Below the pieces are notes generated by a model. The model was not told the DNA's origin and did no database searches. It was given only the letters and a program-made list of their open reading frames with translations. A DNA stretch of 61,297 bases from Dimorphilus gyrociliatus (taxonomy: Eukaryota; Animalia; Annelida). Made by a program: the position numbers and the translations under genes. Position 1 is the first letter of the stretch. The number at the start of each line of letters is the position of its first letter. Location: contig CAJFCJ010000098.1 of NCBI GenBank assembly GCA_904063045.1, positions 18,959 to 80,255 on the forward strand, given 5' to 3'. Shown one piece after another: positions 2,454 to 28,649 of this stretch.

Positions 2454-2970
2454 AAAATTAACACACTTTAAAGGTGTGGATGTATTGCTAAAAGCAGCAA
2501 AACGTTACGAAAAATCAACCTGTGGTAAAGTAATGACAATTATTGCAGGTAATGGTGAACTCTATGGTGTGTTAAAGCGTATGAAAGAAGATTTAGACCT
2601 TGAACATGTATACTTCTTAGGTCACGTTAATCAAGAGACATTAGTTAAAATGTACAATATTGCAGATGTAAGTGTTGTGCCTTCTCGTACAGAACCATTT
2701 GGTCTAGTAGCAATTGAAGCCCTTGCTTGTGGCACACCTGTAGTGGGTACTAACCAAGGTGGTTTACCAGATTTTATTGATAGCAAAGTAGGTCGTCTGG
2801 TTCAAGTAGAAGATGATTTAGAACTGGCTGATGCCATTATGGAAGAACTTAAACACAGCGATAAAGCAGCTAGACGTGCCTACTGTGCTGAATATGCAGT
2901 AAAGGGTTTCTCATTAGAACATTCAATCAAAGCTGTAGAAACATTATATAAAGAAATTTTATGTATGTAA
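2454..2970 (+). pseudogene. 3' half of the GT4 glycosyltransferase, fused directly to the MULE right end
   Basis: Matches the 3' part of the copy at 8446-9548 from aaaattaacacac (K-LTHFKG) to the stop. An in-frame ATG at 2416 lies inside the TIR. Confidence 0.9.
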
Positions 2971-3220: not shown

Positions 3221-4368
3221 TATTCTAAAGGATTTTTGATATGTTTTCATTGATTAATTTACATTTTGAATTAATAATTTAATTCATGAGGCAATTTAAA
3301 TGTGTATAAAAACTTTTCAATAATGACAGAAATTGTTCGATTGCTCTGTAATTCATTATTCAATTATTACCACTAAACAATGGAATTTTAATAATTTGGC
3401 ATTTTCCACCATTTTAAAGACCAACGCAGCCTTTTAACAAACATATTTTTAGAATTTTTGTGCACTTAGATATAGTGAATTATCAATACTTGGACTTTAG
3501 ATATCCATTTCTATTTTACAGTCTAATGGTATTGCAATAGCACAATTGTAACAATCATGTATAGCTGTTGAAAAAGTTGTAGCTTGGCAGTTAGTATAAA
3601 AAAGTAGTTTTCTTACTTTTTAAAACACTTAAATCTATTGTAAAAGTATTTTTCTGTTTGTTTTTATTATTTTGTGAGAGATGCTTGTCACTCTCTGTTC
3701 ACATTTCAACCTCTCTCTTATATATACAGCATAAATTGTTTAGATTCAATAAAAACTGCACACAAAATATCTTTTTAAAACATTTTCTCACTTTCAGTTT
3801 TCTTCATTTTCCACTTCTCCTTATCACATGTGACTCGTTGCAGGGGTAGGAACAATATTTCTAGTGATTTTGGAAAATTAGCACTTTGATTACTTTTAGA
3901 GTATGCTAGGCCTAGACTGAGGATTAGGTCTGTTTTCAAATAGTGTTTTTTGAATATTATGAATTCAATATTTATCAAAAGATGCTAAAAAGAAAATTTT
4001 GACAAGATTCCTACTCCCCTCTATAATGTAACTCCTTGGATGATTGATATCAATTTCATAAATTATTGAACAAAATTGTACTTTGTTGTATTGTAATTGT
4101 AGGAATTTCTCCTTCTTCAGAACAGTATTCGTCCTTTCCAATCATTTATCAATGCACCAAAGTACTCACACAAATAGAACCTTTCAAATTCGTCCACAAG
4201 TAGTCTTAAGAAATGTAATTTCAGTAGAAATTAATCAACAAAATGCCAGTATTTTGTTTAAAGAATATCTATTGAGTAAATGAGTTTCTAGTTCTAAACT
4301 ATTTTAAACAATCACCAGGAATATTAGAAGAATAATTAAAATATTTAAGAGCAGTGTAATTAAACAAC

Positions 4369-5480
4369 CTATTTGCTTAGTTCAAAAAGATCACTTCCGC
4401 AATGCCATATCCGTTCCAGAGAAATTCTTTTAAGTTTTGAACAGTGTTTAAACAAGTTAATTATTATTTTAGACTGGTCTTCGCTCAAATTACATTCTGT
4501 AAAGTTGAGGCATTTTAAAGTATTTGACAAATGAAGAAGTTGTGCACAAATATAGAATAGTCCATTGCCTGTTGTATGATTTCCTGTCAGGTAGATTGTC
4601 TCTAGCTTGGCGCATTCTTTAAAAAGGTTTCCAATATGTCTACATTGCCCATTGTTTAAATTACAACAGCCGAAATTTATCTCTTTTAAACAGCTTGACG
4701 ATTGGATGAGTCCTTTACAAATGTTAAATAATCCTTCTCCCATCTGAACATTCCATGCCAAGTTGATTGTGTCTATTTTAGAGCAACTTTAGAAAAGCTT
4801 TCCAATCTTTCTACATTGTTCCTCTTCTAAATTGCAGCCTTTGAAATCAATCTTTATCAGCTGTTTCACTGATTTTAATGTGTCAGCAATATTCCTTAAT
4901 ATTTGTTCTGATATTGTTGTATTTTCTTTTAGAGTATTTGAAGAGTTGTGTAGATGTTTACATATATAAAAAAATCCATTTTCCATATTGTCATTAAATG
5001 ATAAATTGATCTTTTCAATTTTATGGCAGTTATTTAAAAAATTACCAATTTCTCTGGCCATACTTCCATTTAAAAGACAACTTTTTAAATAAATTTCTGC
5101 TAGAGTATTACAACAATTGTAGAGTCCATCCAAAATAGTAGGCAAGCTGTCTTTTAAATCTTTATTCAATGAAAAGTCAACTTTTTGTAAAGAACAACAT
5201 TTCTTTAATAAATCTGCAACATTCTTAATACTATTCCCATCCAAATTACAATTGCAAAAGTTTATAGCTTTGAGTCCAATTGACGATATTAAAAGTGCTT
5301 GGCAAATTTTAGGTAAAAAGTGTTCAACATTTGGATTCCAACTTAAATTAACTTTTTCAATTTTTGAACAGTTTGAAAGCAGATTTGATAGAGTTTCACA
5401 GTTGTTCTTGCCTAAATCACAATAACATAAATTGATCTTTTGTAATGAATTTGATGAAATGAGTAGTTGTTTAAAATTAA
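4369..5480 (-). pseudogene. NLR-type (ribonuclease-inhibitor-like) LRR fragment with an in-frame stop at 4789-4791
   Basis: About 57 aa periodic LRRs (CNLDGNSIKNVADLLKKCCSLQKVDFSLN...). One TAA at KLF*SC. Truncated 5' by a Tc1 fragment. Confidence 0.8.
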
Positions 5481-5945
5481 TGATAGGCCAACTTTCAAAT
5501 CTTCAATTGTATGATGCAATTGAAACATTTTCCAGATATATTGGGCACTGAAGCTAGAAATTGTAAACATTTTGGTAATTTTGTTCAATGATAGCCCTTC
5601 TTGGCATTTTTCAACAACCAAATAACAAATTTTTTATCAATGACCATTATTTTTTTGAAAAACCAAAGATATAATTATAATAAAATACTTTCCTATTTGA
5701 TTTATGCAGCTTAACCCCCTTTTTTTGATTAAATAGATGGTGACTCATTTTTAACTAACCCCTTTTTTCGAGATGTATTTACTAAAACAGGATTTTATAA
5801 AAGAAAAACAATTTTTTGATCATTTTTCGTAAAGGACATTAGTTTATACATATTAATCATTATTATTACCAATTCAAAGTAGCTATTCAGCATAGCTTAA
5901 TATCAAAACAAAAAATTTTACAAGGTGGCTGGGCACTTTTTGCCT
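5480..5945 (-). mobile_element. Tc1/mariner 5' end: long left TIR (~5730-5945) plus HTH N-terminus (~5480-5625)
   Basis: VVEKCQEGLSLNKITKMFTISSFSAQYIWKMF resembles the Tc1 paired-like HTH. The TIR matches the element end at ~20965-21180. Confidence 0.7.
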
Positions 5946-6125
5946 ATATTTGCATTCAATTATTATAGAGGGAAAATTTTCCAACACGATGGGCCCAGCT
6001 GTCATACAGCAGCCAGAGCAAAGGAATACCTAAAGAGAAAGAAAGTTGAAACATTGCATTCATGGCCAGCTAACTGCCCAGACTTCAACATTATTGAAGC
6101 CAATATGGGGCATATATAAAAGTAT
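5946..6125 (+). mobile_element. Tc1/mariner DDE transposase fragment
   Basis: IFQHDGPSCH...WPANCPDFNIIE, matching the Tc1 QDNAPCH / WPxxSPDLNPIE motifs. Confidence 0.85.
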
Positions 6126-6432
6126 TTTTTAAGACAAAACTCTTCCAATCAATGGATGATGACCTAGTTTTATATATCTAAATCTAAAAGAATCAACTAA
6201 TAATATGATAAAATAATTACAATTTTATTCACAAAGTATATTTAAATACAACCATAATAACACACCCATAATGAATTAATTAAAACAAACAAACAGTGAG
6301 TGTTCACAATATGGTATTGGAACAGATGTAACAACTTTGATACACCTGAAAAATTGAATTCAACAATTCAAATGAAGCCACAATACATTGATTTGGAAGG
6401 TAGAATAGCCATCAAAATTGAAAAGTAACCAG

Positions 6433-7944
6433 AATGGATCCTTAACAATTTGGAAAGTACCATCAATATACCAGTAGTTGGATTTGGATAATAAGTTCAG
6501 CTGATGGTTTGTTGCAAAAATTAAGATTCTTTCTCCATTTTCACAAATGTCTTTCTGGAGAAATTCATCAGGTAAAAAAGTTGTGTTCAAGTTGAAATTA
6601 TACACTTTTGGTTCAACTGGCCTGAATTTTTGTCTGTTTGAGTTTGCCATCCTTTTTAAGTAATTGATATCAGGAAGACATTTAGCATTAGGTTCATATG
6701 ATAATAGAAATTTTTCAGCAATGCTTCTTCCAGATGCTTTGTTATCACTTTTGCAAATAGTTTTTACATCAGTTTTTACTTTAACATCTACTTCCAAATT
6801 AGGTTTTCTGTTGTGATTATGTTCCAGATTGCCTTTAATAAATATACTTCCATTTTGTCTTATTCTAGCTACACATCTTTTTTTCTTACTTCTCACACTG
6901 CATACCCAAATTGTTGTTGTAAGTGTTTTATGTTTAACAACAAAAGAATATCCATCATTCAATAAAATGTCATGTCCTTTTCTGCTTCCTCCTTGTACAA
7001 TCTCAAAATCATTCCTCCTGATTGAGTCATTTTCATCTTCTGTATTTTCATCAGTTCCTTCTACATCCATTGATTGGTTTTCTGATTGCCGAGGACTTTC
7101 ATAATCAAATGTTGAATCTTTAACCTCAGCAGGATCACTTCTGTTATCATTGAAGTCCTTATTACTTTCTTTGTATTGATCAATTTCCAGATTTGTTAAC
7201 TTCTTAAGGCTAACAGTACATTTTCTTTTGTTACATCTTGTGCAAACAGGTATGCTAGGTGTTTCTGTGTCAATGTGTTAAGAAAAGATAGTTGCCTAAA
7301 TCATAATTGAAAACTGATGTACCTGAACATTTTCTATGGATAAGATTCTCACAAAGGCAGCATTTCAAATATTTTTGCCTTCCATAAATTTTTGAATCAC
7401 AATTGTTGCACTTTGAAACCATGTTGTTTCAACAGAACAAATTCACTTGATTATTAAAAAATCACTGTCCTTTCCAAATATTCAAAATGGCTGAAATTTT
7501 GTTTATAGCAAATATTGAAATAGTTGTTATTAAAGAAAATATATTAAATTGTAATATTTTGCATCAAAAATCTAGTTAAAAAGCTTTAAATATTTACCTG
7601 TTCAAAATCTACAAAGAAGCACTTTGTCCAAATTTATTCAGGACATACAGCTTACCTTTGAAAGTATATGCTGTCCAAAGTGAAAGTTTATTTCAACCAC
7701 CTTCACTATTGAACTTCCTGCCATTTCACTTTTCAACAATATTTAATATTTTTAAATAATACTTCACATTGATAAAATATTACTTTTTACAGTCTGAGTA
7801 TATACATATATATCTATTATTAACAAAACCATTTGATGAAAAATCAATAAATAAAAGAAAGAGGAAAGAGGGTGGGAATGTACCTGGGTATGTTCACACC
7901 TGCCTTGGGTACATTCGCACCCAGGTACGTTTGCACCTGACCCT
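6433..7944 (-). mobile_element. MULE family 2, 3'-truncated: left TIR, PHD exon, FLYWCH and first catalytic D
   Basis: TIR with repeated ggtgc(g/a)aa(c/t)gtacc motifs at ~7875-7944. GYSFVVKHK..IWVCSVRSKKKRC and YIDGTF are present. Sequence breaks from the longer 60 kb copy after KDPF. Confidence 0.85.
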
Positions 7945-8390: not shown

Positions 8391-8440
8391 TATAACAAGT
8401 TTCTATTGTTATAGCAAGAAATTTCTCATAAATTACAAGT

Positions 8441-8457
8441 AAGGGATGATGAGTGTG
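8441..8457 (+). promoter_or_regulatory. Shine-Dalgarno-like relic (aaggga, 8441-8446) 8 nt upstream of GTG (8455), with in-frame ATGs at 8446 and 8449
   Basis: The sequence reads aagggATGATGagtGTGaagattttg. The same arrangement is in the inverted copy at ~15183-15199. Confidence 0.45.
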
Positions 8458-9548
8458 AAGATTTTGTTAGTTAATCATTTTCCATTGGAGGGACTGGTAG
8501 TGGCGTGTACACCAAAAATTTGGCAAAGGCTTTAGTAAGTTTTGGCCATAAGGTTAAAATCATTTATCCAGAACACGAAGACAAGACATATAAAGGATTT
8601 GAATCAAGAGTCATTAAGTTTAAGGGACCAAATACAGTAAAGCCTGAAGTGGATTTCAATTTTCCATGTTTTACAACCCATCCAAGAAGTAATACAACTT
8701 ATTATGAATTATCAGATGATCAAATGAAGACTTACATGGATAAATATATAGAAGTGGTTCAAGAGGAAGTAGATACTTTTAAACCAGATATTATCCATGC
8801 ACAGCATTTATGGATTACACCTTATGCTGCTATGTTAACAGGTGTGCCATATGTTATTACTGCCATGGTACGGATTTNNNNNNNNNNGTATAAAGTGCCG
8901 AGCAATAAACGTATGATTTTATTAAATGGTTATGATGAATCCTTATTCCATCCTCTGGACTTAAGTAAAGAAACTGTTTTAAATGAATTTGATGTTACAG
9001 TCAAAACAGATTGTATCGTAGCTTTTGCAGGAAAATTAACACACTTTAAAGGTGTGGATGTATTGCTAAAAGCAGCAAAACGTTACGAAAAATCAACCTG
9101 TGGTAAAGTAATGACAATTATTGCAGGTAATGGTGAACTCTATGGTGTGTTAAAGCGTATGAAAGAAGATTTAGACCTTGAACATGTATACTTCTTAGGT
9201 CACGTTAATCAAGAGACATTAGTTAAAATGTACAATATTGCAGATGTAAGTGTTGTGCCTTCTCGTACAGAACCATTTGGTCTAGTAGCAATTGAAGCCC
9301 TTGCTTGTGGCACACCTGTAGTGGGTACTAACCAAGGTGGTTTACCAGATTTTATTGATAGCAAAGTAGGTCGTCTGGTTCAAGTAGAAGATGATTTAGA
9401 ACTGGCTGATGCCATTATGGAAGAACTTAAACACAGCGATAAAGCAGCTAGACGTGCCTACTGTGCTGAATATGCAGTAAAGGGTTTCTCATTAGAACAT
9501 TCAATCAAAGCTGTAGAAACATTATATAAAGAAATTTTATGTATGTAA
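8446..9548 (+). CDS. Bacterial-type GT4 (GT-B fold) glycosyltransferase, intronless; this copy has a 10-N gap and two 1 bp homopolymer deletions
   Basis: KILLVNHFPLEGTGSG, PDIIHAQH, YVITAHGTDL, AGKLTHFKG and PSRTEPFGLVAIEA (E-x7-E), GTPVVGTNQGG. No signal peptide, TM segment or intron. Indels near 8490 (G run) and 8863 (C run) relative to the inverted copy. Confidence 0.85.
8878..8887. other. Assembly gap (10 N) inside the GT4 gene, replacing ~110 bp present in the other copy
   Basis: N run; compared with 14645-14760. Confidence 0.95.
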
Positions 9549-9632
9549 TACTGTAGGTAATTGCTCATTTTACTCAATACATATTCTTTAAATGAAATAC
9601 TTGTGTTTTGCTGATTAATTTCTACCAAAATT

Positions 9633-10532
9633 AAAATGTTCAGGTACATCAGTTTTCAATTATGATTTAGGCAACTATCTTTTCTTAACACATTGACACA
9701 GAAACACCTAGCATACCTGTTTGCACAAGATGTAACAAAAGAAAATGTACTGTTAGCCTTAAGAAGTTAACAAATCTGGAAATTGATCAATACAAAGAAA
9801 GTAATAAGGACTTCAATGATAACAGAAGTGATCCTGCTGAGGTTAAAGATTCAACATTTGATTATGAAAGTCCTCGGCAATCAGAAAACCAATCAATGGA
9901 TGTAGAAGAACTGATGAAAATACAGAAGATGAAAATGACTCAATCAGGAGGAATGATTTTGAGATTGTACAAGGAGGAAGCAGAAAAGGACATGACATTT
10001 TATTGAATGATGGATATTCTTTTGTTGTTAAACATAAAACACTTACAACAACAATTTGGGTATGCAGTGTGAGAAGTAAGAAAAAAAGATGTGTAGCTAG
10101 AATAAGACAAAATGGAAGTATATTTATTAAAGGCAATCTGGAACATAATCACAACAGAAAACCTAATTTGGAAGTAGATGTTAAAGTAAAAACTGATGTA
10201 AAAACTATTTGCAAAAGTGATAACAAAGCATCTGGAAGAAGCATTGCTGAAAAATTTCTATTATCATATGAACCTAATGCTAAATGTCTTCCTGATATCA
10301 ATTACTTAAAAAGGATGGCAAACTCAAACAGACAAAAATTCAGGCCAGTTGAACCAAAAGTGTATAATTTCAACTTGAACACAACTTTTTTACCTGATGA
10401 ATTTCTCCAGAAAGACATTTGTGAAAATGGAGAAAGAATCTTAATTTTTGCAACAAACCATCAGCTGAACTTATTATCCAAATCCAACTACTGGTATATT
10501 GATGGTACTTTCCAAATTGTTAAGGATCCATT
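9633..10532 (+). mobile_element. MULE family 2 fragment (inverted copy, lacks the left TIR)
   Basis: ORF 10003-10605 has FLYWCH and YIDGTF. A small indel near 9908 shifts the frame. Confidence 0.85.
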
Positions 10533-10844
10533 CTGGTTACTTTTCAATTTTGATGGCTATTCTACCTTCCAAATCAATGTATTGTGGCTTCATTTGAATT
10601 GTTGAATTCAATTTTTCAGGTGTATCAAAGTTGTTACATCTGTTCCAATACCATATTGTGAACACTCACTGTTTGTTTGTTTTAATTAATTCATTATGGG
10701 TGTGTTATTATGGTTGTATTTAAATATACTTTGTGAATAAAATTGTAATTATTTTATCATATTATTAGTTGATTCTTTTAGATTTAGATATATAAACTAG
10801 GTCATCATCCATTGATTGGAAGAGTTTTGTCTTAAAAAATACTT

Positions 10845-11480
10845 TTATATATGCCCCATATTGGCTTCAATAATGTTGAAGTCTGGGCAGTTAGCTGGCC
10901 ATGAATGCAATGTTTCAACTTTCTTTCTCTTTAGGTATTCCTTTGCTCTGGCTGCTGTATGACAGCTGGGCCCATCGTGTTGGAAAATTTTCCCTCTATA
11001 ATAATTGAATGCAAATATAGGCAAAAAGTCCCCAGCCACCTTGTAAAATTTTTGTTTTGATATTAAGCTATGCTGAATAGCTACTTTGAATTGGTAATAA
11101 TAATGATTAATATGTATAAACTAATGTCCTTTACGAAAAATGATCAAAAAATTGTTTTTCTTTTATAAAATCCTGTTTTAGTAAATACATCTCGAAAAAA
11201 GGGGTTAGTTAAAAATGAGTCACCATCTATTTAATCAAAAAAAGGGGGTTAAGCTGCATAAATCAAATAGGAAAGTATTTATTATAATTATATCTTTGGT
11301 TTTTCAAAAAAATAATGGTCATTGATAAAAAATTTGTTATTTGGTTGTTGAAAAATGCCAAGAAGGGCTATCATTGAACAAAATTACCAAAATGTTTACA
11401 ATTTCTAGCTTCAGTGCCCAATATATCTGGAAAATGTTCAATTGCATCATACAATTGAAGATTTGAAAGTTGGCCTATCA
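10845..11480. mobile_element. Tc1 fragments: DDE on minus (10845-11020), TIR plus HTH on plus (11020-11480)
   Basis: Mirror of 5480-6125. Confidence 0.75.
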
Positions 11481-12590
11481 TTAATTTTTAAACAACTACT
11501 CATTTCATCAAATTCATTACAAAAGATCAATTTATGTTATTGTGATTTAGGCAAGAACAACTGTGAAACTCTATCAAATCTGCTTTCAAACTGTTCAAAA
11601 ATTGAAAAGTTAATTTAAGTTGGAATCCAAATGTTGAACACTTTTTACCTAAAATTTGCCAAGCACTTTTAATATCGTCAATTGGACTCAAAGCTATAAA
11701 CTTTTGCAATTGTAATTTGGATGGGAATAGTATTAAGAATGTTGCAGATTTATTAAAGAAATGTTGTTCTTTACAAAAAGTTGACTTTTCATTGAATAAA
11801 GATTTAAAAGACAGCTTGCCTACTATTTTGGATGGACTCTACAATTGTTGTAATACTCTAGCAGAAATTTATTTAAAAAGTTGTCTTTTAAATGGAAGTA
11901 TGGCCAGAGAAATTGGTAATTTTTTAAATAACTGCCATAAAATTGAAAAGATCAATTTATCATTTAATGACATATGGAAAATGGATTTTTTATATATGTA
12001 AACATCTACACAACTCTTCAAATACTCTAAAAGAAAATACAACAATATCAGAACAAATATTAAGGAATATTGCTGACACATTAAAATCAGTGAAACAGCT
12101 GATAAAGATTGATTTCAAAGGCTGCAATTTAGAAGAGGAACAATGTAGAAAGATTGGAAAGCTTTTCTAAAGTTGCTCTAAAATAGACACAATCAACTTG
12201 GCATGGAATGTTCAGATGGGAGAAGGATTATTTAACATTTGTAAAGGACTCATCCAATCGTCAAGCTGTTTAAAAGAGATAAATTTCGGCTGTTGTAATT
12301 TAAACAATGGCAATGTAGACATATTGGAAACCTTTTTAAAGAATGCGCCAAGCTAGAGACAATCTACCTGACAGGAAATCATACAACAGGCAATGGACTA
12401 TTCTATATTTGTGCACAACTTCTTCATTTGTCAAATACTTTAAAATGCCTCAACTTTACAGAATGTAATTTGAGCGAAGACCAGTCTAAAATAATAATTA
12501 ACTTGTTTAAACACTGTTCAAAACTTAAAAGAATTTCTCTGGAACGGATATGGCATTGCGGAAGTGATCTTTTTGAACTAAGCAAATAGG
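11480..12590 (+). pseudogene. NLR-type LRR fragment (inverted copy, with extra 1 bp indels)
   Basis: Mirror of 4369-5480; ORFs 11717-12001 and 11943-12170. Confidence 0.78.
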
Positions 12591-13987
12591 TTGTTTAATT
12601 ACACTGCTCTTAAATATTTTAATTATTCTTCTAATATTCCTGGTGATTGTTTAAAATAGTTTAGAACTAGAAACTCATTTACTCAATAGATATTCTTTAA
12701 ACAAAATACTGGCATTTTGTTGATTAATTTCTACTGAAATTACATTTCTTAAGACTACTTGTGGACGAATTTGAAAGGTTCTATTTGTGTGAGTACTTTG
12801 GTGCATTGATAAATGATTGGAAAGGACGAATACTGTTCTGAAGAAGGAGAAATTCCTACAATTACAATACAACAAAGTACAATTTTGTTCAATAATTTAT
12901 GAAATTGATATCAATCATCCAAGGAGTTACATTATAGAGGGGAGTAGGAATCTTGTCAAAATTTTCTTTTTAGCATCTTTTGATAAATATTGAATTCATA
13001 ATATTCAAAAAACACTATTTGAAAACAGACCTAATCCTCAGTCTAGGCCTAGCATACTCTAAAAGTAATCAAAGTGCTAATTTCCAAAATCACTAGAAAT
13101 ATTGTTCCTACCCCTGCAACGAGTCACATGTGATAAGGAGAAGTGGAAAATGAAGAAAACTGAAAGTGAGAAAATGTTTTAAAAAGATATTTTGTGTGCA
13201 GTTTTTATTGAATCTAAACAATTTATGCTGTATATATAAGAGAGAGGTTGAAATGTGAACAGAGAGTGACAAGCATCTCTCACAAAATAATAAAAACAAA
13301 CAGAAAAATACTTTTACAATAGATTTAAGTGTTTTAAAAAGTAAGAAAACTACTTTTTTATACTAACTGCCAAGCTACAACTTTTTCAACAGCTATACAT
13401 GATTGTTACAATTGTGCTATTGCAATACCATTAGACTGTAAAATAGAAATGGATATCTAAAGTCCAAGTATTGATAATTCACTATATCTAAGTGCACAAA
13501 AATTCTAAAAATATGTTTGTTAAAAGGCTGCGTTGGTCTTTAAAATGGTGGAAAATGCCAAATTATTAAAAATTCCATTGTTTAGTGGTAATAATTGAAT
13601 AATGAATTACAGAGCAATCGAACAATTTCTGTCATTATTGAAAAGTTTTTATACACATTTAAATTGCCTCATGAATTAAATTATTAATTCAAAATGTAAA
13701 TTAATCAATGAAAACATATCAAAAATCCTTTAGAATATTGGTTCAGTTATAAACATCACTGGTTGTACTTTGTTGTTTTGAAATTGGAGGAATTTCTGGT
13801 TTCTTACAACTGTAAGCATTCTTTCCAATCATTTGCCAATTTGCCAAAGTACTCACACAAATAGAACCTTTAGAATTCGTCCACAAATAGTCTTAGCAAA
13901 TGTAATTTTGGTAGAAATTAATCAGCAAAACACAAGTATTTCATTTAAAGAATATGTATTGAGTAAAATGAGCAATTACCTACAGTA

Positions 13988-15194
13988 TTACATACATAAA
14001 ATTTCTTTATATAATGTTTCTACAGCTTTGATTGAATGTTCTAATGAGAAACCCTTTACTGCATATTCAGCACAGTAGGCACGTCTAGCTGCTTTATCGC
14101 TGTGTTTAAGTTCTTCCATAATGGCATCAGCCAGTTCTAAATCATCTTCTACTTGAACCAGACGACCTACTTTGCTATCAATAAAATCTGGTAAACCACC
14201 TTGGTTAGTACCCACTACAGGTGTGCCACAAGCAAGGGCTTCAATTGCTACTAGACCAAATGGTTCTGTACGAGAAGGCACAACACTTACATCTGCAATA
14301 TTGTACATTTTAACTAATGTCTCTTGATTAACGTGACCTAAGAAGTATACATGTTCAAGGTCTAAATCTTCTTTCATACGCTTTAACACACCATAGAGTT
14401 CACCATTACCTGCAATAATTGTCATTACTTTACCACAGGTTGATTTTTCGTAACGTTTTGCTGCTTTTAGCAATACATCCACACCTTTAAAGTGTGTTAA
14501 TTTTCCTGCAAAAGCTACGATACAATCTGTTTTGACTGTAACATCAAATTCATTTAAAACAGTTTCTTTACTTAAGTCCAGAGGATGGAATAAGGATTCA
14601 TCATAACCATTTAATAAAATCATACGTTTATTGCTCGGCACTTTATACAGTTGTGCTGTTTCAGCATCTACTTGTTTAGAGATGGTAATAATCATCTTAG
14701 CATTAGCCACCCCTTCTATAGCAAAAACTATGGTATCTGTCATCTTTTACAAAGCCTTTTAAATCCGTACCATGGGCAGTAATAACATATGGCACACCTG
14801 TTAACATAGCAGCATAAGGTGTAATCCATAAATGCTGTGCATGGATAATATCTGGTTTAAAAGTATCTACTTCCTCTTGAACCACTTCTATATATTTATC
14901 CATGTAAGTCTTCATTTGATCATCTGATAATTCATAATAAGTTGTATTACTTCTTGGATGGGTTGTAAAACATGGAAAATTGAAATCCACTTCAGGCTTT
15001 ACTGTATTTGGTCCCTTAAACTTAATGACTCTTGATTCAAATCCTTTATATGTCTTGTCTTCGTGTTCTGGATAAATGATTTTAACCTTATGGCCAAAAC
15101 TTACTAAAGCCTTTGCCAAATTTTTGGTGTACACGCCACTACCAGTCCCCTCCAATGGAAAATGATTAACTAACAAAATCTTCACACTCATCAT
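13988..15194 (-). CDS. Bacterial-type GT4 glycosyltransferase, complete copy; 401 aa once one extra base in a 5-T run (~14723-14727) is removed
   Basis: ORFs 14703-15194 and 13988-14743 join as KDDRYHSFAIEGVANAK. 1207 nt minus 1 = 402 codons including the stop. Confidence 0.88.
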
Positions 15195-15751
15195 CCCTTA
15201 CTTGTAATTTATGAGAAATTTCTTGCTATAACAATAGAAACTTGTTATAAAAGTAGTCAGCATAAATATGCTACAAAGTAAATTTTGATAGTCCAAATAT
15301 TAAAAGTCTTTTTCTTTGCACACATACATTTGTCAACTATAATCTCACAATAGAGAAGTAGTATTGAGCCAGGATTGTACTATTCAAAAGAGTTTTGTGG
15401 CATTGTGTGTAATTATATAAATTTGATAGATTTTTAAATTATATTAAAGATTTTGTGGATTGTGTGGTAATTATATAAGATTTGATAAAGATTTTTCAAA
15501 AATCATTAAACTAGGATAAAAGTTGTTCCCCTGCTAGCTGACTGTTGCTGAACATTTGTTTCTTTTGCTCCTAACACTGCATAGCCAGAATGTTGTCTTT
15601 TTTCTTTTTCTTTTAAAGAAAAAAATATGTGCTACAATATGGAAAAATCTTTTACTGGAGGAGAAACCTGTGTATATCTGTATGATCAGAATCAGAATCA
15701 AGTTTTTTTCTTCAAATTATTATCATAACTCCATATATCATATATTTTCTT

Positions 15752-17263
15752 CAGGTCAGGTGCAAACGTACCTGGGTGCGAATGTACCCAAGGCAGGTGT
15801 GAACATACCCAGGTACATTCCCACCCTCTTTCCTCTTTCTTTTATTTATTGATTTTTCATCAAATGGTTTTGTTAATAATAGATATATATGTATATACTC
15901 AGACTGTAAAAAGTAATATTTTATCAATGTGAAGTATTATTAAAAAATATTAAATATTGTTGAAAAGTGAAATGGCAGGAAGTTCAATAGTGAAGGTGGT
16001 TGAAATAAACTTTCACTTTGGACAGCATATACTTTCAAAGGTAAGCTGTATGTCCTGAATAAATTTGGACAAAGTGCTTCTTTGTAGATTTTGAACAGGT
16101 AAATATTTAAAGCTTTTTAACTAGATTTTTGATGCAAAATATTACAATTTAATATATTTTCTTTAATAACAAATTATTTCAATATTTGCTATAAACAAAA
16201 TTTCAGCCATTTTGAATATTTGGAAAGGACAGTGATTTTTTAATAATCAAGTGAATTTGTTCTGTTGAAACAACATGGTTTCAAAGTGCAACAATTGTGA
16301 TTCAAAAATTTATGGAAGGCAAAAATATTTGAAATGCTGCCTTTGTGAGAATCTTATCCATAGAAAATGTTCAGGTACATCAGTTTTCAAATATGATTTA
16401 GGCAACTATCTTTTCTTAACACATTGACACAGAAACACCTAGCATACCTGTTTGCACAAGATGTAACAAAAGAAAATGTACTGTTAGCCTTAAGAAGTTA
16501 ACAAATCTGGAAATTGATCAATACAAAGAAAGTAATAAGGACTTCAATGATAACAGAAGTGATCCTGCTGAGGTTAAAGATTCAACATTTGATTATGAAA
16601 GTCCTCGGCAATCAGAAAACCAATCAATGGATGTAGAAGGAACTGATGAAAATACAGAAGATGAAAATGACTCAATCAGGAGGAATGATTTTGAGATTGT
16701 ACAAGGAGGAAGCAGAAAAGGACATGACATTTTATTGAATGATGGATATTCTTTTGTTGTTAAACATAAAACACTTACAACAACAATTTGGGTATGCAGT
16801 GTGAGAAGTAAGAAAAAAAGATGTGTAGCTAGAATAAGACAAAATGGAAGTATATTATTAAAGGCAATCTGGAACATAATCACAACAGAAAACCTAATTT
16901 GGAAGTAGATGTTAAAGTAAAAACTGATGTAAAAACTATTTGCAAAAGTGATAACAAAGCATCTGGAAGAAGCATTGCTGAAAAATTTCTATTATCATAT
17001 GAACCTAATGCTAAATGTCTTCCTGATATCAATTACTTAAAAAGGATGGCAAACTCAAACAGACAAAAATTCAGGCCAGTTGAACCAAAAGTGTATAATT
17101 TCAACTTGAACACAACTTTTTTACCTGATGAATTTCTCCAGAAAGACATTTGTGAAAATGGAGAAAGAATCTTAATTTTTGCAACAAACCATCAGCTGAA
17201 CTTATTATCCAAATCCAACTACTGGTATATTGATGGTACTTTCCAAATTGTTAAGGATCCATT
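15752..17263 (+). mobile_element. MULE family 2, 3'-truncated (third copy)
   Basis: Left TIR caggtcaggtgcaaacgtacc..., PHD exon from ~16274, FLYWCH ORFs 16627-17327. Confidence 0.85.
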
Positions 17264-17575
17264 CTGGTTACTTTTCAATTTGATGGCTATTCTACCTTCC
17301 AAATCAATGTATTGTGGCTTCATTTGAATTGTTGAATTCAATTTTTCAGGTGTATCAAAGTTGTTACATCTGTTCCAATACCATATTGTGAACACTCACT
17401 GTTTGTTTGTTTTAATTAATTCATTATGGGTGTGTTATTATGGTTGTATTTAAATATACTTTGTGAATAAAATTGTAATTATTTTATCATATTATTAGTT
17501 GATTCTTTTAGATTTAGATATATAAAACTAGGTCATCATCCATTGATTGGAAGAGTTTTGTCTTAAAAAATACTT

Positions 17576-18512
17576 TTATATATGCCCCATATTGGCTTCA
17601 ATAATGTTGAAGTCTGGGCAGTTAGCTGGCCATGAATGCAATGTTTCAACTTTCTTTCTCTTTAGGTATTCCTTTGCTCTGGCTGCTGTATGACAGCTGG
17701 GCCCATCGTGTTGGAAAATTTTCCCTCTATAATAATTGAATGCAAATATAGGCAAAAAGTCCCCAGCCACCTTGTAAAATTTTTTGTTTTGATATTAAGC
17801 TATGCTGAATAGCTACTTTGAATTGGTAATAATAATGATTAATATGTATAAACTAATGTCCTTTACGAAAAATGATCAAAAAATTGTTTTCTTTTATAAA
17901 ATCCTGTTTTAGTAAATACATCTCGAAAAAAGGGGTTAGTTAAAAATGAGTCACCATCTATTTAATCAAAAAAAGGGGGTTAAGCTGCATAAATCAAATA
18001 GGAAAGTATTTTATTATAATTATATCTTTGGTTTTTCAAAAAAATAATGGTCATTGATAAAAAATTTGTTATTTGGTTGTTGAAAAATGCCAAGAAGGCT
18101 ATCATTGAACAAAATTACCAAAATGTTTACAATTTCTAGCTTCAGTGCCCAATATATCTGGAAAATGTTTCAATTGCATCATACAATTGAAGATTTGAAA
18201 GTTGGCCTATCATTAATTTTTAAACAACTACTCATTTCATCAAATTCATTACAAAAGATCAATTTATGTTATTGTGATTTAGGCAAGAACAAACTGTAAA
18301 CTCTATCAAATCTGCTTTCAAACTGTTCAAAAATTGAAAAAGTTAATTTAAGTTGGAATCCAAATGTTGAACACTTTTTACCTAAAATTTGCCAAGCACT
18401 TTTAATATCGTCAATTGGACTCAAAGCTATAAATTTTGCAATTGTAATTTGGATGGGAATAGTATTAAGAATGTTCAGATTTATTAAAGAAATGTTGTTC
18501 TTTACAAAAAGT
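17576..18512. mobile_element. Third copy of the Tc1 fragments followed by the start of the LRR fragment, ending at the gap
   Basis: Repeats 10845-11780. Confidence 0.75.
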
Positions 18513-19024
18513 NNNNNNNNNNNNNNNNNNNNNNNNNNNNNNNNNNNNNNNNNNNNNNNNNNNNNNNNNNNNNNNNNNNNNNNNNNNNNNNNNNNNNNNN
18601 NNNNNNNNNNNNNNNNNNNNNNNNNNNNNNNNNNNNNNNNNNNNNNNNNNNNNNNNNNNNNNNNNNNNNNNNNNNNNNNNNNNNNNNNNNNNNNNNNNNN
18701 NNNNNNNNNNNNNNNNNNNNNNNNNNNNNNNNNNNNNNNNNNNNNNNNNNNNNNNNNNNNNNNNNNNNNNNNNNNNNNNNNNNNNNNNNNNNNNNNNNNN
18801 NNNNNNNNNNNNNNNNNNNNNNNNNNNNNNNNNNNNNNNNNNNNNNNNNNNNNNNNNNNNNNNNNNNNNNNNNNNNNNNNNNNNNNNNNNNNNNNNNNNN
18901 NNNNNNNNNNNNNNNNNNNNNNNNNNNNNNNNNNNNNNNNNNNNNNNNNNNNNNNNNNNNNNNNNNNNNNNNNNNNNNNNNNNNNNNNNNNNNNNNNNNN
19001 NNNNNNNNNNNNNNNNNNNNNNNN
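18513..19024. other. Assembly gap (N run)
   Basis: N run. Confidence 0.98.
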
Positions 19025-19433: not shown

Positions 19434-20564
19434 TGCTGTCTTGACTGGATGTTCATTTCACTGGTCTCAGGCAATATTTAGAAAAATTCAGGTTTATTAA
19501 TTTCTAAAACAATTTTAACAATCCAATTAATATTTGTTTTGTTTAAGGAACTCAGTTATAGCAGGGAATTTAGAAAAAAAGAGGGAGCTTGGGAATCCAT
19601 GAGAATGATTATGTCTTTGCCATATTTGCCTCATGGCATGATTGAAAATCAATTCACTAAAATTCAAAATCAACTGACAAAAGAAAATAAACTGTCTGAT
19701 TTGTTGGACTACGTGTCTAATAGTTGGATAAAAAATACATTTTGGTCTCCAGGAGACTTGGTCTGTTTTTGATCAAAGCATAAGAACAAATAATGATCTG
19801 GAAGGTTATCATCAAAGGCTGAATAAAATTGTTGGAGAAAATGTTTCTTTTTATTTAGTGATTGATGAGTTAAAGAGGGAAGCAGATATGATAAATCTGT
19901 ACAAAAAGCTTTTAAGTGAGAGAAAGATAATTAGACTTGAAAGGAAGACTTATAGCCAAATTCAAAAAGATCTTTTCTTAATTTGGGAAAATTTTAAAAC
20001 AGGTGAAATTAATGCAAACCAACTTCTGCAGCTTTGCTCAGAATTATATTATTGAAAATAATTGACAATACCTTGATATCAAAAAACTTTACTTGAAAAC
20101 ACTGGTCATTTAATTGTAAAACTTGAAAAAAGTTTGTCTTTCTTTTAAAGTTGTTTACAAATAATCAATACACAATTTATATGGTAAACCTAAAGTTGCA
20201 TATTATAAAAAGTTTTCTATTAACTTGTTTTTCAATATAGATTTACATTTAAATGAAATTTATTTTTATTTATGTTTTCTTTTGGTTCATGGATATTTAA
20301 TTTCAGTTTATAGACATTTTCCTTCACTTTATGGACACTTTCTTTCACTTTACGGATGTTTTCTTTCACTCCATAAGGAAATATAATTCCTAAAAAATTA
20401 AGCTAATAGGAAAAATTATGTGAATTTTTTTTGAATATTTCATTTATTAAGTATATATTTAACATATTCTTTTACCATAGGTTCACTTTTACAACATATA
20501 TTTATATTTAAATGAAATTTATTTTAATGGACGTTTTCTTTCATGGACATTTTCTGTCGACCCC
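19434..20564 (+). mobile_element. MULE family 1, 5'-truncated copy (3' transposase exons plus right TIR)
   Basis: GCSFHWSQ exon, TNNDLEG exon with a +1 near 19753, and the end ctgtcgacccc. Confidence 0.88.
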
Positions 20565-21186
20565 TGGTGCTGCATGCTATACATCTAGGAGTACCTTACA
20601 GTATCTAAATGAAAAGAACTTAAGACACTAGTAAGACTGGCCAGCGCAGAGTCCTGACTTAAATCCTATTGAAAATTTATGGTCATACCTAAAAGGAAGG
20701 GTTGGTAAACATCTGTTCACACATGTTGATGATCTATGGAGGGTAACACAGCAAGAATTTGACAATATTCCAACTGAATATGTTGAAAAATTGTTTAACA
20801 GTGTTAGAAAGGGGCTACAACTGTGTCATTTCAATAAGGTTGGCCAGACTAAGAATTTAAAAGGTTTAAAAGTATTATTACTATATTTTCATAAAATATT
20901 ATAATAATTCATGTATAGAAATTGTTAAGGAGTGTCCTAAGGTAGATTTAAAGTAAAATATTTAATTAAATAAATGGTGACTCATTTTTAACTAACCCCT
21001 TTTTTCGAGGTATAATTACTAAACAGGACTTTATAAAAGAAAAACAATTTTTGATAATTTTTTGTACAGGACATTAGTTTCTACATATTAATCATTATTA
21101 TTACCAATTCAAAGTAGTTATTTTGTATATCTTAATATCAAAACTAAAAATTTTACAGGGTGGCTGGGGACTTTTTGCCTCTACTG
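20565..21186 (+). mobile_element. Tc1/mariner 3' end (degenerate transposase C-terminus plus long right TIR ending ...gcctctactg|TA)
   Basis: DWPAQSPDLNPIENLWSYLK. The terminus reverse-complements to TA|CAGTAGAGGCAAAAAG, a Tc1-like end. Confidence 0.85.
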
Positions 21187-21250
21187 TATAATATAAAATC
21201 ATACTTATGATGCATTTCTGATAAATATATTTCATTGCAAGTACACAAGA

Positions 21251-21457
21251 CTTTTTGACAGAAAACATCCACAAATGAGAAATTTCAAGACTAGATTTTG
21301 GATTGAGAAATGGTTACGAAGAAGAAGACAACAAATGATTTGTACTTAGGGGGGTCTTCTATAAGGGTTAGGGGTAATGCAAAAGGTTAGGTACTGCCAA
21401 GGGCTGGGTTAGGGTTAGGGTAAAAGGACTGATTTGTGGATGTTTCCTGTCACATCC
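21251..21457 (-). mobile_element. 207 bp MULE-type MITE, reverse orientation, no TSD recognised
   Basis: TIRs gacagaaaacatccacaaat / atttgtggatgtttcctgtc, with internal gggttagggttaggg. Confidence 0.7.
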
Positions 21458-21549
21458 TGGCTGTCATTTTATTTATCAACATTGTTTTTATTTTTGTAGA
21501 TTCCATTATTTTATTCTAAATAATAAAATTAAGAAAACTTAATATTTTT

Positions 21550-21780
21550 ATGGGTTTGGAAATTTGCTGAATCATTGTTCCATACTGGAAACAATTTATC
21601 TAAGTGATAATAAAAATATGGTAATTGGATTTTTAAATATTTGTGAAGGACTTCAAATGTCATTAAATAGTCTAAAAATTCTTTATATATGTGACTGAAT
21701 TAAATGAAGAACAATGTGTAGTGTTTGGAAATTTGCTGAAAGATTGTGTGGGCTTACACAGGATTGATTGGGACTCTTGA
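21550..21780 (+). pseudogene. Isolated NLR-type LRR fragment; 2 bp deletion near 21697 relative to the copy at 28666-28884
   Basis: LETIYLSDNKNMVIGFLNICEGLQMSLNSLKILYICD. Confidence 0.7.
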
Positions 21781-22141
21781 AGTGTGAGAATTCTGTTTCT
21801 CTTTTTTGATTTAAACAAAAAAAACCTTTTGCAAACCCTAACCCTAATCCTAAAACTTTGGATGAATATCATTTAACCATTTATTTGTTTATAGTTGTGG
21901 ACTAACATGAGGTTCTATTTGGACCAGTACTTTGGCATAATATTAAATGAGTAGTACAGATAAATAAGGTTTGGATGAGAACAAAATTCCTATGATCATG
22001 TACAACAAAGTATATTTTAATATTTAATTTAAATGAAGGCATTTTGTTTTCCATTGTATATGTATATTAATTTTCAGACTGAAAATTTCAGAAACTGTGA
22101 TGACAACAGCAAAAGCATTATAGTTTTAAGACAATTAATTA

Positions 22142-23628
22142 CTATTTATATAGAAGGATTTGAAAAGGATAGATTTTATTGTTAGGGACATTAATATGAA
22201 GTTTTGTGTTTTTGTTAGAACGTTTAAAAAAGAATTGATTTATATTGTTATCAATATAAATCATATTACAAATGCTTCCATAAGTTGTATCATTTTTTAA
22301 ATCATTCCAGATAATTAAATTATCAGGACTAACATTTTCTTTCAACAAAATATAAGTATCATTATTATCATTTTTTATTGAATCTTTAATATTAGACAAA
22401 TCAATTGAATGAGTAGATGGAGGTAAATTATATCACATATTTTATTTCTTTTAAGTGAATTAACTGTAAAAAAAAAGAAAATTTTATAATTTGCTTTTAA
22501 GAAAATAAAGATTGATATACTTGTTTTTCAAAAAATGAATATGCATAAATTATTATTCCATGAATATTTTTGCTTTTGAATTAAGTTTGAAATTTTTTGA
22601 AATTATAAATTTCAATTTACTACAGACTATATGATCATGTAAAAATTGACCAGTAAAATTTACAATTTTTATATTTTTCCAAATGTAATCTTCAATTTTT
22701 AGAATACTTTCAGATGTAAAATCATTTCCATTGTCAACTGTAAAAAGAAACAAAGGGAAATATATTAAATTAGGGCGAATATATATAGGTGCAATCGGGG
22801 TAGGCAAACAGAGTTGAAGTAGACAACTTTAGTTTGAAATTCAATAACATTATCAGTCAAAATTTCTATTTCATTTTGAAAATTGAAAAAATAATTTTGG
22901 AGCGAATTGATTTGTCCAGTATTTAAATTTGTATTATTTTGTAGAACATTTTCAAATGTATTTTCAAATTGATAAGCAAAATCTGTGGAAGAGGAGAGTG
23001 AGAGTTGATGGTTATGGTTATGTCTTGGGGTTAGGGTTATAGGTTAAATCTAACCCTAACTCTAAATTAGATATTATTACTTTCAACTTTTTAATGAATT
23101 TCCCAAAATAATATCAAATTTTGAAATTTCTGTATCTAAAAAAGAAAGAAAGAATTATTCATTATTTATATAATAAATATAAACATTTTACTATTTTTTC
23201 CAGTTAGTAAGCAAACACTTGATATTGAATAAATATTTTCAAGATCAACAGCCCACCATGAATATTCATTTGGATCAGCATCAGTTAATGAACATTGAAA
23301 TATATTCTTCAATCAACCAATCAAAAAAAAATAGATTAATAATTTATTCATGGGTAAAAACAAAAACATAATAAATTATACTTTACTATTTCTAGTGATT
23401 TTAATCATTGAATCTGTTGCAAAAGTTGCTAGATTTGTATATTCCTCACTTAATATAGATCCATTTGTTGAGCTTTGAAAAGCCATTTTTCCTCTAGCAA
23501 GATTGTTTGTAGAATTGATTATTGTAGGAAAAAGTCCTTTAAATTAAAGTTAAAAAAGAAGGTAGAAATAACAAAAATAGAGAAAATATTTATTATTTAC
23601 CACAAAAGATAAATGTTGCCAAAATCAT
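22142..23628 (-). pseudogene. Secreted F-type lectin (FTP/fucolectin domain) paralog, internally deleted
   Basis: Exon 1 at 23628-23601 (MILATFIFC) is spliced to exon 2 from 23536 (GLFPTIINSTNNLARGKMAFQSST). Next exon has DADPNEYSWWAVDLENIYSISSVCLL. Downstream exons align with those of the 36.5-38.7 kb gene. Confidence 0.7.
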
Positions 23629-23678
23629 TTTTTTTTCTCTCCCTCTCACCCTTTGCCAATTAAGCGATTATTATTATC

Positions 23679-23885
23679 AGACACGACAGAAAACGTCCCC
23701 AAATTCATGGTTTAACCCTAACCCTAACCTACCCCTTGTCTCTCCTTAACCTTCTTGATTGCTCCTAACCTTTAGATGGAACCCCCCTAACTATAAATCA
23801 AAAGCTTCTTTACTCCTCCTAACAATTCTTCAATCTGAAATGTTGCTTTCAAAAATCTCATTTGGGGACATTTTCTGTCGGCCCC
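23679..23885 (+). mobile_element. 207 bp MULE-type MITE with a perfect 9 bp TSD attattatc
   Basis: TSD at 23670-23678 and 23886-23894. TIRs cgacagaaaacgtcccc / ggggacattttctgtcg match the family-1 MULE ends. Confidence 0.9.
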
Positions 23886-24474
23886 ATTATTATCCTATAT
23901 ACAAATGGACACAAAAAACCATAAACTTATTAAAAATAATCATAAAAGAAGATATTATTAAGTAAATCCCTTTTTTCTAATATATTGAATTTAATTATCC
24001 TAAATGTTTTTAAAGTTCTAGATTCTAATTCTACTAATTAAAAGTCTTTCTAAAGCTCCAGATTTATAATTTCTATGAAATAAGACTTTTTCTAAACTTC
24101 CACCATTATAATTCCTACAACACAAGAGTCATAATATCTAAAGTCTAAATATCTTTACATTATTATTTCTAAGTGCACATTCTTTCTTGTTAGAATTAAA
24201 AATTGAAAGGGAAAAATGATTGAAATTTATATGAAACAATAAATATATGAATAATCTAAATCCATTAAATCAAACTGTTGAATATTTTCTTAGAACTAAA
24301 GTTGTGGACAATTTCTCCTGTGGACATTTTCTCTTGTGAACTTGGAAGGTTCAATTTGTTTAAGTACTTTGGTAAGTTGATAAATGATTGGAAAGAATAC
24401 TGTTCAGAAGAAGCAGAAATTCCTACATTTACAATACATCAAAGTACAAAGAAAATTCGCACACTGTAATAAAT

Positions 24475-24640
24475 CTATGGTTTTACCCTAACCCTAACCC
24501 GGCCATTGTTTTTGCCTAACCTTTTTGAATACCCGTAACCTCCTAAGAACATATCAACAGTTATCTTATTCCTCCTAACCATTTCCCAGGCTGAAATCTA
24601 ACTTTCAAATATTTCATTTATGGCCGTTTTCGACCGGTCC
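24475..24640 (+). mobile_element. Degenerate MITE-like fragment with ccctaa repeats (copy at ~31577-31742)
   Basis: accctaaccctaacccgg... ending atggccgttttcgaccggtccc. Confidence 0.45.
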
Positions 24641-25798
24641 CAATGAAATTAGTTAATATTTAATAAATTCAACAATAAATTTTTTTCTGAACAATAACTT
24701 AATGTTTAATGAAGTTATAAAGTCAGTTACATTAAGCTTACAAAACCAATGATTATTTCATGATATATGTGAATAAACTTTCAATTTATAAATGAAAACT
24801 TATATTTCTTTAGAATATATTCATTGGAATGACAGTATCTAATACTACTCAAAAGAACAATGGCTTGTTAAGGTTGGAATAAAACTATTGATTTCGTGGA
24901 AATTTTTTGTTACATCAATTATATGTCAATGTATAATATTAACTCTAATAAAAAATTTCAGTTCCAGTTACAGTGCATATTGCAATTTAATCAATTGAAC
25001 AAATGAACAAATGTCTTGGTCCATTTCAACCAAATTTCCTCTTAATGTCTAATTTAAATGCTTTATTTCAAATAAAATACTTAAAGTTGCAGCAATAAAA
25101 AAGTTGAATAACAGAGTAGATAGTTTCTAATAGCAGGTTTCCAAGTTACCAAACTAGTGTCCAATATTGAAAGAGTAGAAGGCTTGTCCCATTAGAGGTT
25201 GTTTCCAGTTGATCTTTCCAGTGTAAGGTAATAACCAATCACCACTTTACAATTGGTGGTCTAGTTTATATTTAACCTTGGGAACAATATGTTACAAAAC
25301 AGAGATATCTTTTGTATTATTTAGATAAAATATTAACCTTTTATTGGGTTCCCCATTATGTTTTTCCAATTGATTTCTGTTTAAACCCCTCTGCTATTTG
25401 TATTTTTACCCTAATGATATATCATTAGAATGTTTTGTTTCAACTGTTCCAACTCAATCATAGTTATTAAACAGATGGCGTTAGCATTTCTCTGTATGTG
25501 TTATTCAAAGATATTGGCAAAAAGCTCAATTAGTATAGACACTTCAGAATCTGTAACATTCTGTTATTAGGTATGCAAATAGCAGACTATTCATCAACTG
25601 CAATCGGTGATTTGCCAAAGAGTATGTAACTTGGTTAGGAGCAAAAGGAGCAAGACAACTTGTGAAGATACCTGTATAGCTATTTGTTCAACATTGATAT
25701 CAAATATATACTATTGGGAAAGTGGCTGGGAGGCAATACTTTGGTTGTGTAGCATCATATGTGCAGTGTTCAATATTTGCAGTAACTACTTATTAATT

Positions 25799-27666: not shown

Positions 27667-28288
27667 TGGTGCTGCATGCTATACATCTAGGAGTACCTTA
27701 CAGTATCTAAATGAAAAGAACTTAAGACACTAGTAAGACTGGCCAGCGCAGAGTCCTGACTTAAATCCTATTGAAAATTTATGGTCATACCTAAAAGGAA
27801 GGGTTGGTAAACATCTGTTCACACATGTTGATGATCTATGGAGGGTAACACAGCAAGAATTTGACAATATTCCAACTGAATATGTTGAAAAATTGTTTAA
27901 CAGTGTTAGAAAGGGGCTACAACTGTGTCATTTCAATAAGGTTGGCCAGACTAAGAATTTAAAAGGTTTAAAAGTATTATTACTATATTTTCATAAAATA
28001 TTATAATAATTCATGTATAGAAATTGTTAAGGAGTGTCCTAAGGTAGATTTAAAGTAAAATATTTAATTAAATAAATGGTGACTCATTTTTAACTAACCC
28101 CTTTTTTCGAGGTATAATTACTAAACAGGACTTTATAAAAGAAAAACAATTTTTGATAATTTTTTGTACAGGACATTAGTTTCTACATATTAATCATTAT
28201 TATTACCAATTCAAAGTAGTTATTTTGTATATCTTAATATCAAAACTAAAAATTTTACAGGGTGGCTGGGGACTTTTTGCCTCTACTG
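27667..28288 (+). mobile_element. Tc1 3' end (duplicate of 20565-21186)
   Basis: Same sequence offset by 7102. Confidence 0.85.
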
Positions 28289-28352
28289 TATAATATAAAA
28301 TCATACTTATGATGCATTTCTGATAAATATATTTCATTGCAAGTACACAAGA

Positions 28353-28559: not shown

Positions 28560-28649
28560 TGGCTGTCATTTTATTTATCAACATTGTTTTTATTTTTGTA
28601 GATTCCATTATTTTATTCTAAATAATAAAATTAAGAAAACTTAATATTT

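Follow-up and report, generated by a model that had tools for sequence, protein, structure and literature searches.

Claims of bacterium-to-animal gene transfer often fall to contamination. The described cases of horizontal gene transfer (HGT) in animals include the foreign genes of bdelloid rotifers, the UDP-glycosyltransferases of Tetranychus, and examples from insects and nematodes (PMC13342648). Also relevant to the locus described here are Pack-MULEs and gene capture by Mutator-like elements (MULEs), and the Phantom clade of MULEs, which carry FLYWCH zinc fingers (PMC6446971). The genome of the annelid Dimorphilus gyrociliatus, available as a PacBio assembly of ~78 Mb with a median intron of 66 bp, contains MULE and Mariner DNA transposons and islands of transposable elements (TEs), and the paper that describes it contains no HGT analysis (PMC7854359). 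A literature search likewise returned no paper describing HGT in D. gyrociliatus.

We analyzed a stretch of 61,297 nucleotides from an assembly of this species (hereafter the window), in which a gene on the minus strand had been predicted, from sequence alone, to encode an intronless bacterial-type GT4 glycosyltransferase acquired by HGT. The gene (GT4) resembles known animal HGT cases in that it is an intronless bacterial open reading frame that falls within a bacterial clade, is linked to host repeats, has the read depth of the host and shows RNA coverage. It departs from them in several respects: the insert appears to be unusually young, being 87% identical at the nucleotide level to living bacteria; it still has the remnant of a neighboring gene and a barely shifted GC content; and it was received by an annelid whose genome is compact. 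We consider it quite likely that an intact Clostridia GT4 gene was recently transferred into Phantom/MULE repeat DNA of the animal and was then duplicated. The features on which the argument draws are as follows.

13988-15194, minus strand: GT4 glycosyltransferase coding sequence (ORFs, Pfam, read contigs, intact translation)
15186-15194, minus strand: GT4 start region, ATG ATG AGT, with the GTG start codon of the original bacterial gene next (alignment with bacterial genes)
15169-15249, minus strand: remnant of the bacterial gene upstream, comprising the final 27 codons of a 411-aa protein (tblastn to residues 385-411, 85% identity; DNA alignments)
13972-13987, minus strand: remnant of the bacterial intergenic spacer (alignment; the blastn match ends at 13974)
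13763-13970, no strand assigned: dispersed host repeat R1 (copies, sequence comparison, read depth)
12678-12882, no strand assigned: inverted R1 copy (205 nt, 84% complementary to 13763-13967; 880 nt apart)
15402-15458, no strand assigned: copy of a 57-nt repeat, in the assembly and missing from four of four runs
15519-15623, minus strand: degenerate FLYWCH zinc-finger fragment, Phantom/MULE-derived, upstream of GT4 (tblastn, blastn)
16072-18512, plus strand: Phantom/MULE transposase gene fragment, divergent from GT4 (joints, tblastn, Pfam FLYWCH)
8391-9548, plus strand: GT4 copy 2 (GT4 at 8446-9548) with the upstream-gene remnant (Pfam at 8505-9548, blastn, tblastn)
2454-2970, plus strand: GT4 copy 3, 5'-truncated, the last ~169 codons (blastn, self-comparison)

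In the assembly, GT4 is split into a 163-aa ORF (14703-15194) and a 251-aa ORF (13988-14743), which overlap on the minus strand and match the Pfam families Glyco_transf_4 (E 6e-14; 52.9 bits, cut-off 28.5) and Glycos_transf_1 (E 1.7e-36; 125.8 bits, cut-off 26.4), respectively. No record for the 251-aa ORF turned up in public assemblies. The frame is broken by one surplus base in a run of five As at 14723-14727. When contigs of four public runs (X1, X2, X4 and X5) were placed on positions 12500-16700, the base at 14723 was absent at 100% of depth in all four, and it is the sole difference between assembly and reads in the coding sequence. As every run omits this one base, the frameshift is a long-read assembly error. 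Its removal yields a 1,206-nt ORF of 401 aa with a single terminal stop, so that the uninterrupted, intronless 401-codon gene of the original prediction is confirmed. All of the motifs that had been quoted for it (KILLVNHFPLEGxGSG, AHGTD, AGKLxxxKG and EPFGLVAIEA) are found in the translation, and its peak 19-residue Kyte-Doolittle hydropathy is 1.37, with no stretch resembling a transmembrane segment or signal peptide, again as had been claimed. What the prediction of a single locus at 13988-15194 overlooked was that the assembly itself had introduced the frameshift and that two further copies of the gene lie in the window.

The flanks contain more single-base differences between the assembly and the four runs (at 13080, 15604, 15710 and 15753), and in X1, X2, X4 and X5 alike the reads join 15401 directly to 15459, skipping the 57-nt repeat copy, which TRF did not report. 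The assembly has uncorrected indel errors that break ORFs, and other genes of this genome that appear to be frameshifted may be intact.

A homolog search with the C-terminal half of GT4 as the query gave 2,732 relatives, and there was no eukaryotic protein among the best 120 of these. Over the full length of GT4, the best matches are 92.7-90.2% identical (the closest, P0123, at 92.7% of amino acids), a second group is at 81-83%, and the remainder are at ~65% or lower. In a tree of 123 rows, GT4 falls in a nine-row clade (aLRT 99) nested within a 19-row clade (aLRT 100), and a codon tree places the window GT4 as sister to the bacterial locus L012. We fetched the contigs that encode nine close proteins, and all nine are bacterial, with a common gene order: SLT, an unknown 411-aa protein, GT4, a 581-aa cNMP-binding protein and an NTP-transferase (GalU), to which the longer contigs add TyrRS, a two-component system and pyruvate:ferredoxin oxidoreductase. 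This synteny around GT4 is kept across bacterial lineages that are 92%, 80% and ~77% identical. The nesting within bacteria that had been expected of a transferred gene is therefore what the tree gives, with every checked clade member on a syntenic bacterial contig.

These observations also bear on the possibility that GT4 is an old, vertically inherited eukaryotic gene or that it moved from animal to bacteria, to which we attach practically no credence. We found no supporting point for it, and it is at odds with the bacterial gene order conserved at all three levels of identity, including the overlapping upstream gene, with the retention of the tail of that bacterial gene in the animal copy, and with the lack of eukaryotic proteins in the best 120 matches.

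The named relatives of GT4 are Clostridia, in line with the earlier guess of a Firmicutes-like source. Among them are Helicovermis profundi (Bacillota, Clostridia) as well as an Acidaminobacter sp. isolate and Acidaminobacteraceae MAGs, the latter two at 60-63% identity over the C-terminal half of GT4. A scan of GTDB genomes returned only two Clostridia MAGs, 77-79% identical to GT4, so that the donor species is unsampled there. A scan of viral contigs found no relative, and there was no sign of a phage or virus as vector. At the DNA level, window positions 13974-15249 match the bacterial locus L001 at 86.8% over 1,276 nt (blastn), and the single gap in this alignment is the assembly error described above. 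The GC content of the animal GT4 is 35%, compared with 37% for the bacterial gene and 29% for the whole window. Because of the bacterial clade and its synteny, the tail of the upstream gene and the short stretch of DNA homology, the direction and source of the transfer are clear: a fragment of a Clostridia chromosome entered the genome.

Several side observations concern these bacterial relatives. Run X2 contains a 513-nt contig of depth 10 (compared with ~4,800 for the locus) that matches 14493-14703 (211 nt) with 14 mismatches. At 93% identity, it is closer to GT4 than any bacterial gene that we fetched (87%), and it could be a diverged paralogue or derive from a donor-like bacterium in the culture. 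In L001, positions 8785-10020 encode the conserved 411-aa protein, which matches nothing in Pfam or NCBIfam and whose gene shares 20 nt with the start of GT4, and positions 11229-12974 encode the conserved 581-aa protein, which is recognizable at its C-terminus only (cNMP-binding). Together with GalU, these two proteins have the look of a glucosylation module that is undescribed and possibly regulated by nucleotides.

The protein encoded by GT4 has an EX7E-type motif (EPFGLVAIEA) and a glycine-rich N-terminal loop. A model of P0123, which served as a bacterial proxy, has a pLDDT of 90.3 and a pTM of 0.87 and adopts a GT-B fold. It aligns with TM-scores of 0.80-0.81 to a Leishmania major SPS-like protein, MshA, BshA and a cyanobacterial sucrose-phosphate synthase (SPS); the identity to solved structures is 18-24%. 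These four are retaining GT4 enzymes, which use a UDP-sugar to glycosylate acceptors that are small acids or phosphorylated compounds. The likeness to MshA, BshA and SPS thus extends to the GT-B fold, the EX7E-type motif, the glycine-rich loop and the soluble character of the protein. The bacterial neighborhood of GT4, with GalU, a cNMP-binding protein and the unknown 411-aa protein, differs from those of mycothiol, bacillithiol and sucrose synthesis. Membership of the BshA or MshA family was rejected since the scores lie far under the curated NCBIfam cut-offs: P0123 scores 115.6 against MshA (TIGR03449; cut-off 462.5) and 108 against BshA (TIGR03999; cut-off 273.7), and the GT4 halves of the window are likewise under both. 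Of the BshA/MshA-like label in the original prediction, then, the fold stands and the family assignment does not.

The GT4 product would be a soluble cytosolic retaining GT-B enzyme. The NTP-transferase of the bacterial cluster scores 392.6 against GalU, above the cut-off of 326.8, and because galU is part of this cluster, UDP-glucose would be the likeliest sugar donor. By analogy with MshA, BshA and SPS, the acceptor may be a small acid or a phosphorylated compound.

The bacterial DNA amounts to ~1,276 bp, from about 13972 to 15249 (~1.28 kb). DNA homology begins 55 nt upstream of the GT4 ATG, in the remnant of the upstream gene. This remnant, which marks the 5' limit of the bacterial DNA, runs into the start of GT4, an overlap that is also found in the bacteria. 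At the other end, homology stops ~15 nt past the GT4 stop codon, just ahead of the ribosome-binding site that serves the following gene in the bacteria. No further bacterial neighbor genes were found in the window. At the start of the gene, the animal copy reads ATG ATG AGT GTG where the four nearest bacterial genes, which start at GTG, read GTG ACG AGT GTG. This alignment fits the idea that the ATG start could be an adaptation to eukaryotic initiation. More distant bacteria have an ATG at the second position, and the donor may already have carried one.

The transferred DNA would have been a ~1.28-kb piece of chromosomal DNA from an anaerobic, uncultured member of the Clostridia that entered the nuclear DNA of the animal, and it would have consisted of the tail of one gene, the whole of GT4 and a few spacer bases. 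The landing site would have been repeat DNA derived from Phantom/MULE elements, and the insert would then have been duplicated along with ~6.7 kb of flanks.

Integration into animal DNA is seen in each of several read sets. In X1, a single 2,779-nt contig covers 13379-16212 and extends more than 590 nt past each junction, at a depth of ~10.5 within the insert and of 9.9-10.9 in the flanking DNA. Contigs of X5 traverse both 13974 and 15249, and the depth in X2 is ~4,800 over GT4 and 3,700-5,900 in the non-repeat flanks; overall, depth is even across insert and flanks in X1, X2 and X5. In X4, which comes from a separate 2017 study and carries a different organism label, a 2,074-nt contig covers 13970-16098 with zero mismatches in GT4. 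Two of the checks that had been proposed for this locus, reads across the host junctions and depth relative to the host, both favor integration: short-read contigs of X1, X4 and X5 cross the junctions, and GT4 depth equals flank depth in X1 and X2.

Bacterial contamination, or a chimeric long-read contig, might be suspected, given that the assembly is an older PacBio one that contains N gaps and indel errors (PMC7854359), the more so as bacteria are certainly present in the culture. However, just 1.28 kb is bacterial and the neighboring bacterial genes are absent, both junctions are crossed without a mismatch in short-read assemblies made independently from four runs that belong to two studies, GT4 has the depth of its flanks, and the nearest bacterial DNA is merely 87% identical. 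Within the reach of these data, both contamination and a chimeric assembly are excluded by short-read contigs that span each junction at even depth, and we regard either as exceedingly improbable. Tree, junction-spanning contigs and depth all agree with the bacteria-to-animal transfer originally proposed, which we would amend by adding that the gene is multi-copy, that it lies within transposon-derived DNA and that the transfer was probably recent.

On the 3' side of GT4, repeat R1 ends exactly at the bacterial DNA, whereas its other copies proceed with TTTCTAGTTCTAAAC; R1 is thus truncated by the bacterial DNA and does not naturally end there. Copies of R1 are found at 12674-12882 (inverted), 40724-40932 and 4076-4284, and its read depth is 6-40 times that of its neighbors. 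On the 5' side, there is a short high-copy repeat at 15317-15386, followed by the FLYWCH fragment, whose 35 aa are 51% identical to a FLYWCH ORF of the window (78% by blastn to the FLYWCH part of the Phantom copies). Farther out lies the transposase gene fragment, which comprises a PHD-like exon, FLYWCH and the start of a MULE domain and ends in a gap of 512 Ns. Its two introns, 16099-16207 and 16376-16433 (109 and 58 nt), are marked by GT..AG joints that are present in X4 only, so that intronless GT4 contrasts with a spliced neighbor on the plus strand. Copies of the fragment are located at 9633-11781, 5180-7333 and 59634-60829. Rfam gave nothing in the window.

Two simpler accounts of this arrangement were rejected. 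R1 is not a MITE that inserted after the transfer, as bacterial DNA does not resume past R1, and the bacterial DNA is not a simple insertion into R1, as the 5' flank of GT4 is not the continuation of R1.

The surroundings of GT4 are reminiscent of a Pack-MULE in that the gene lies between a FLYWCH fragment and a Phantom-associated repeat and has been multiplied together with a Phantom transposase fragment. GT4 could have been captured by, or integrated into, a Phantom/MULE element that was still mobile and have spread as transposon cargo, as an expressed, whole bacterial enzyme gene. Such a history would account for the many identical copies, the flanking FLYWCH and R1 sequences and the divergent, spliced transposase gene. 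However, no terminal inverted repeats with a target-site duplication were found around GT4 in the window, and the sole inverted pair (12678-12882 with 13763-13967) lies wholly 3' of the gene. In contrast to Pack-MULEs, the GT4 copies share ~6.7 kb of flanks in tandem or inverted arrangement, which is more like segmental duplication, and classical Pack-MULEs carry fragments of host genes where here there is a whole bacterial gene. We consider spread as cargo unlikely.

The copies belong to a repeated unit of ~6.7 kb in which GT4 and its 5' flank are accompanied by the Phantom fragment, a spacer and R1. Two arms contain this unit and meet in inverted orientation at 9633, and N gaps occur at 8878-8887 and 18513-19024. 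Copy 2 is interrupted by the first of these gaps (10 Ns, with ~102 nt missing) and by two 1-nt deletions. Copy 3 belongs to a segment in which 13701-14504 corresponds to 3257-2454 at 100% identity (blastn), and at 2454 it abuts other Phantom-like DNA. Compared base by base, the three GT4 copies of the window have zero substitutions among them. The 6.7-kb repeat is either a very recent duplication or in part an artefact of the PacBio assembly. A step in X2 depth near 14474, from 5,900 to 4,800, hints at surplus 3' fragments, and X5 shows the opposite.

More generally, the left half of the window (1-34800) consists largely of big, near-identical repeats, part of which may be assembly artefact. 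It includes a 7.1-kb tandem duplication (19434-27645 compared with 26536-34726; 99.4%) of another Phantom-like region.

Of the 167 columns in which at least 95% of 122 bacterial homologs agree, GT4 retains the conserved residue in 165, and the two exceptions, S78T and A162V, are conservative. When branch-wise dN and dS were fitted to pairwise distances, the window branch had a dS of 0.38, a dN of 0.030 and a dN/dS of 0.08 (bootstrap 0.05-0.13), values that include unsampled bacterial history; the dN/dS of bacterial branches is mostly 0.04-0.06. The surplus of dN on the window branch would allow just ~1-3% of neutral divergence. Because this surplus is small, GT4 would be either a very recent arrival or a gene that has been constrained since transfer. 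The low dN/dS of the branch may stem from the unsampled donor and is no proof of selection in the animal, and as the three copies carry no substitutions, they provide no test of selection within the animal.

The mean depth of X4 is 127 over 13970-16098 compared with 8-11 over 12855-13664 (~12-fold), in contigs that are strandless. Given its spliced joints and very uneven depth, X4 is probably an RNA run, and GT4 is probably transcribed. Antisense RNA, or read-through out of the divergent transposase gene, might account for the X4 signal over GT4. There is no canonical AATAAA within 330 nt past the GT4 stop, just an AATGAA at +45. Nor was a poly(A) end seen in the X4 contigs.

These data are also those on which a more modest view of the gene would draw, namely that GT4 is a neutral passenger, too young to have decayed, which sits in silent TE islands, is transcribed incidentally and has no role. 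The gene is surrounded by TE-rich DNA without conserved genes, and TE islands of this genome are in closed chromatin (PMC7854359). It lacks an intron and a canonical poly(A) signal, its RNA contigs are strandless, and the putative ceiling of ~1-3% on neutral divergence fits a very young insert. On the other side are the ATG where the nearest relatives have GTG, an RNA depth ~12 times that of the flank, and the retention of several copies with intact frames, none of which is decisive. We regard a passenger without any role as a realistic possibility, if a less than even one. GT4 may benefit the animal or may merely not yet have been lost.

The host is probably D. gyrociliatus, to judge from a 48% identical protein of this species found with one transposase ORF of the window and from agreement with the published genome (PMC7854359). 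The two organism labels under which the identical sequence was deposited presumably reflect the renaming of the species. The transfer could in principle be real and the recipient another eukaryote in the worm culture, such as a protist or micro-animal. In keeping with this, the window has no conserved housekeeping gene, a search for NLRs found nothing, the sole named relative of a transposase ORF in the window is a D. gyrociliatus protein only 48% identical, and run X6, which dates from 2024 and bears the same species label, contains almost none of the locus. We nevertheless consider another recipient very improbable, as the same sequence occurs with zero mismatches in runs of two studies that are three years apart and carry two organism labels, and as the intron sizes and MULE content match those of the published genome (PMC7854359).

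Two observations on the host are separate from the question of transfer. In X6 (273 million contig letters), almost no sampled words of the 4.2-kb locus are present, those of host repeats included; X6 may stem from a lineage that has diverged but shares the species name, or it may lack the locus. At 51754-59094, the window contains an uninterrupted ORF of 2,446 aa with a NACHT domain (Pfam E 4e-8), for whose N-terminal 600 residues no relative was found among proteins of 1,345-4,280 aa.

Taken as a whole, the locus is a well-supported bacterium-to-animal transfer of an already known kind, and it passes the standard tests for contamination. The transfer appears to be young, as the tail of the neighboring gene, the original gene order and the close living relatives of the donor can all still be recognized. 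It may thus offer a useful glimpse, in nature, of how such a transfer begins, from integration into transposon DNA to the appearance of an ATG start and a gain in copy number. The small genome of the host and its maintenance in laboratory culture would make it possible to follow these steps by experiment.
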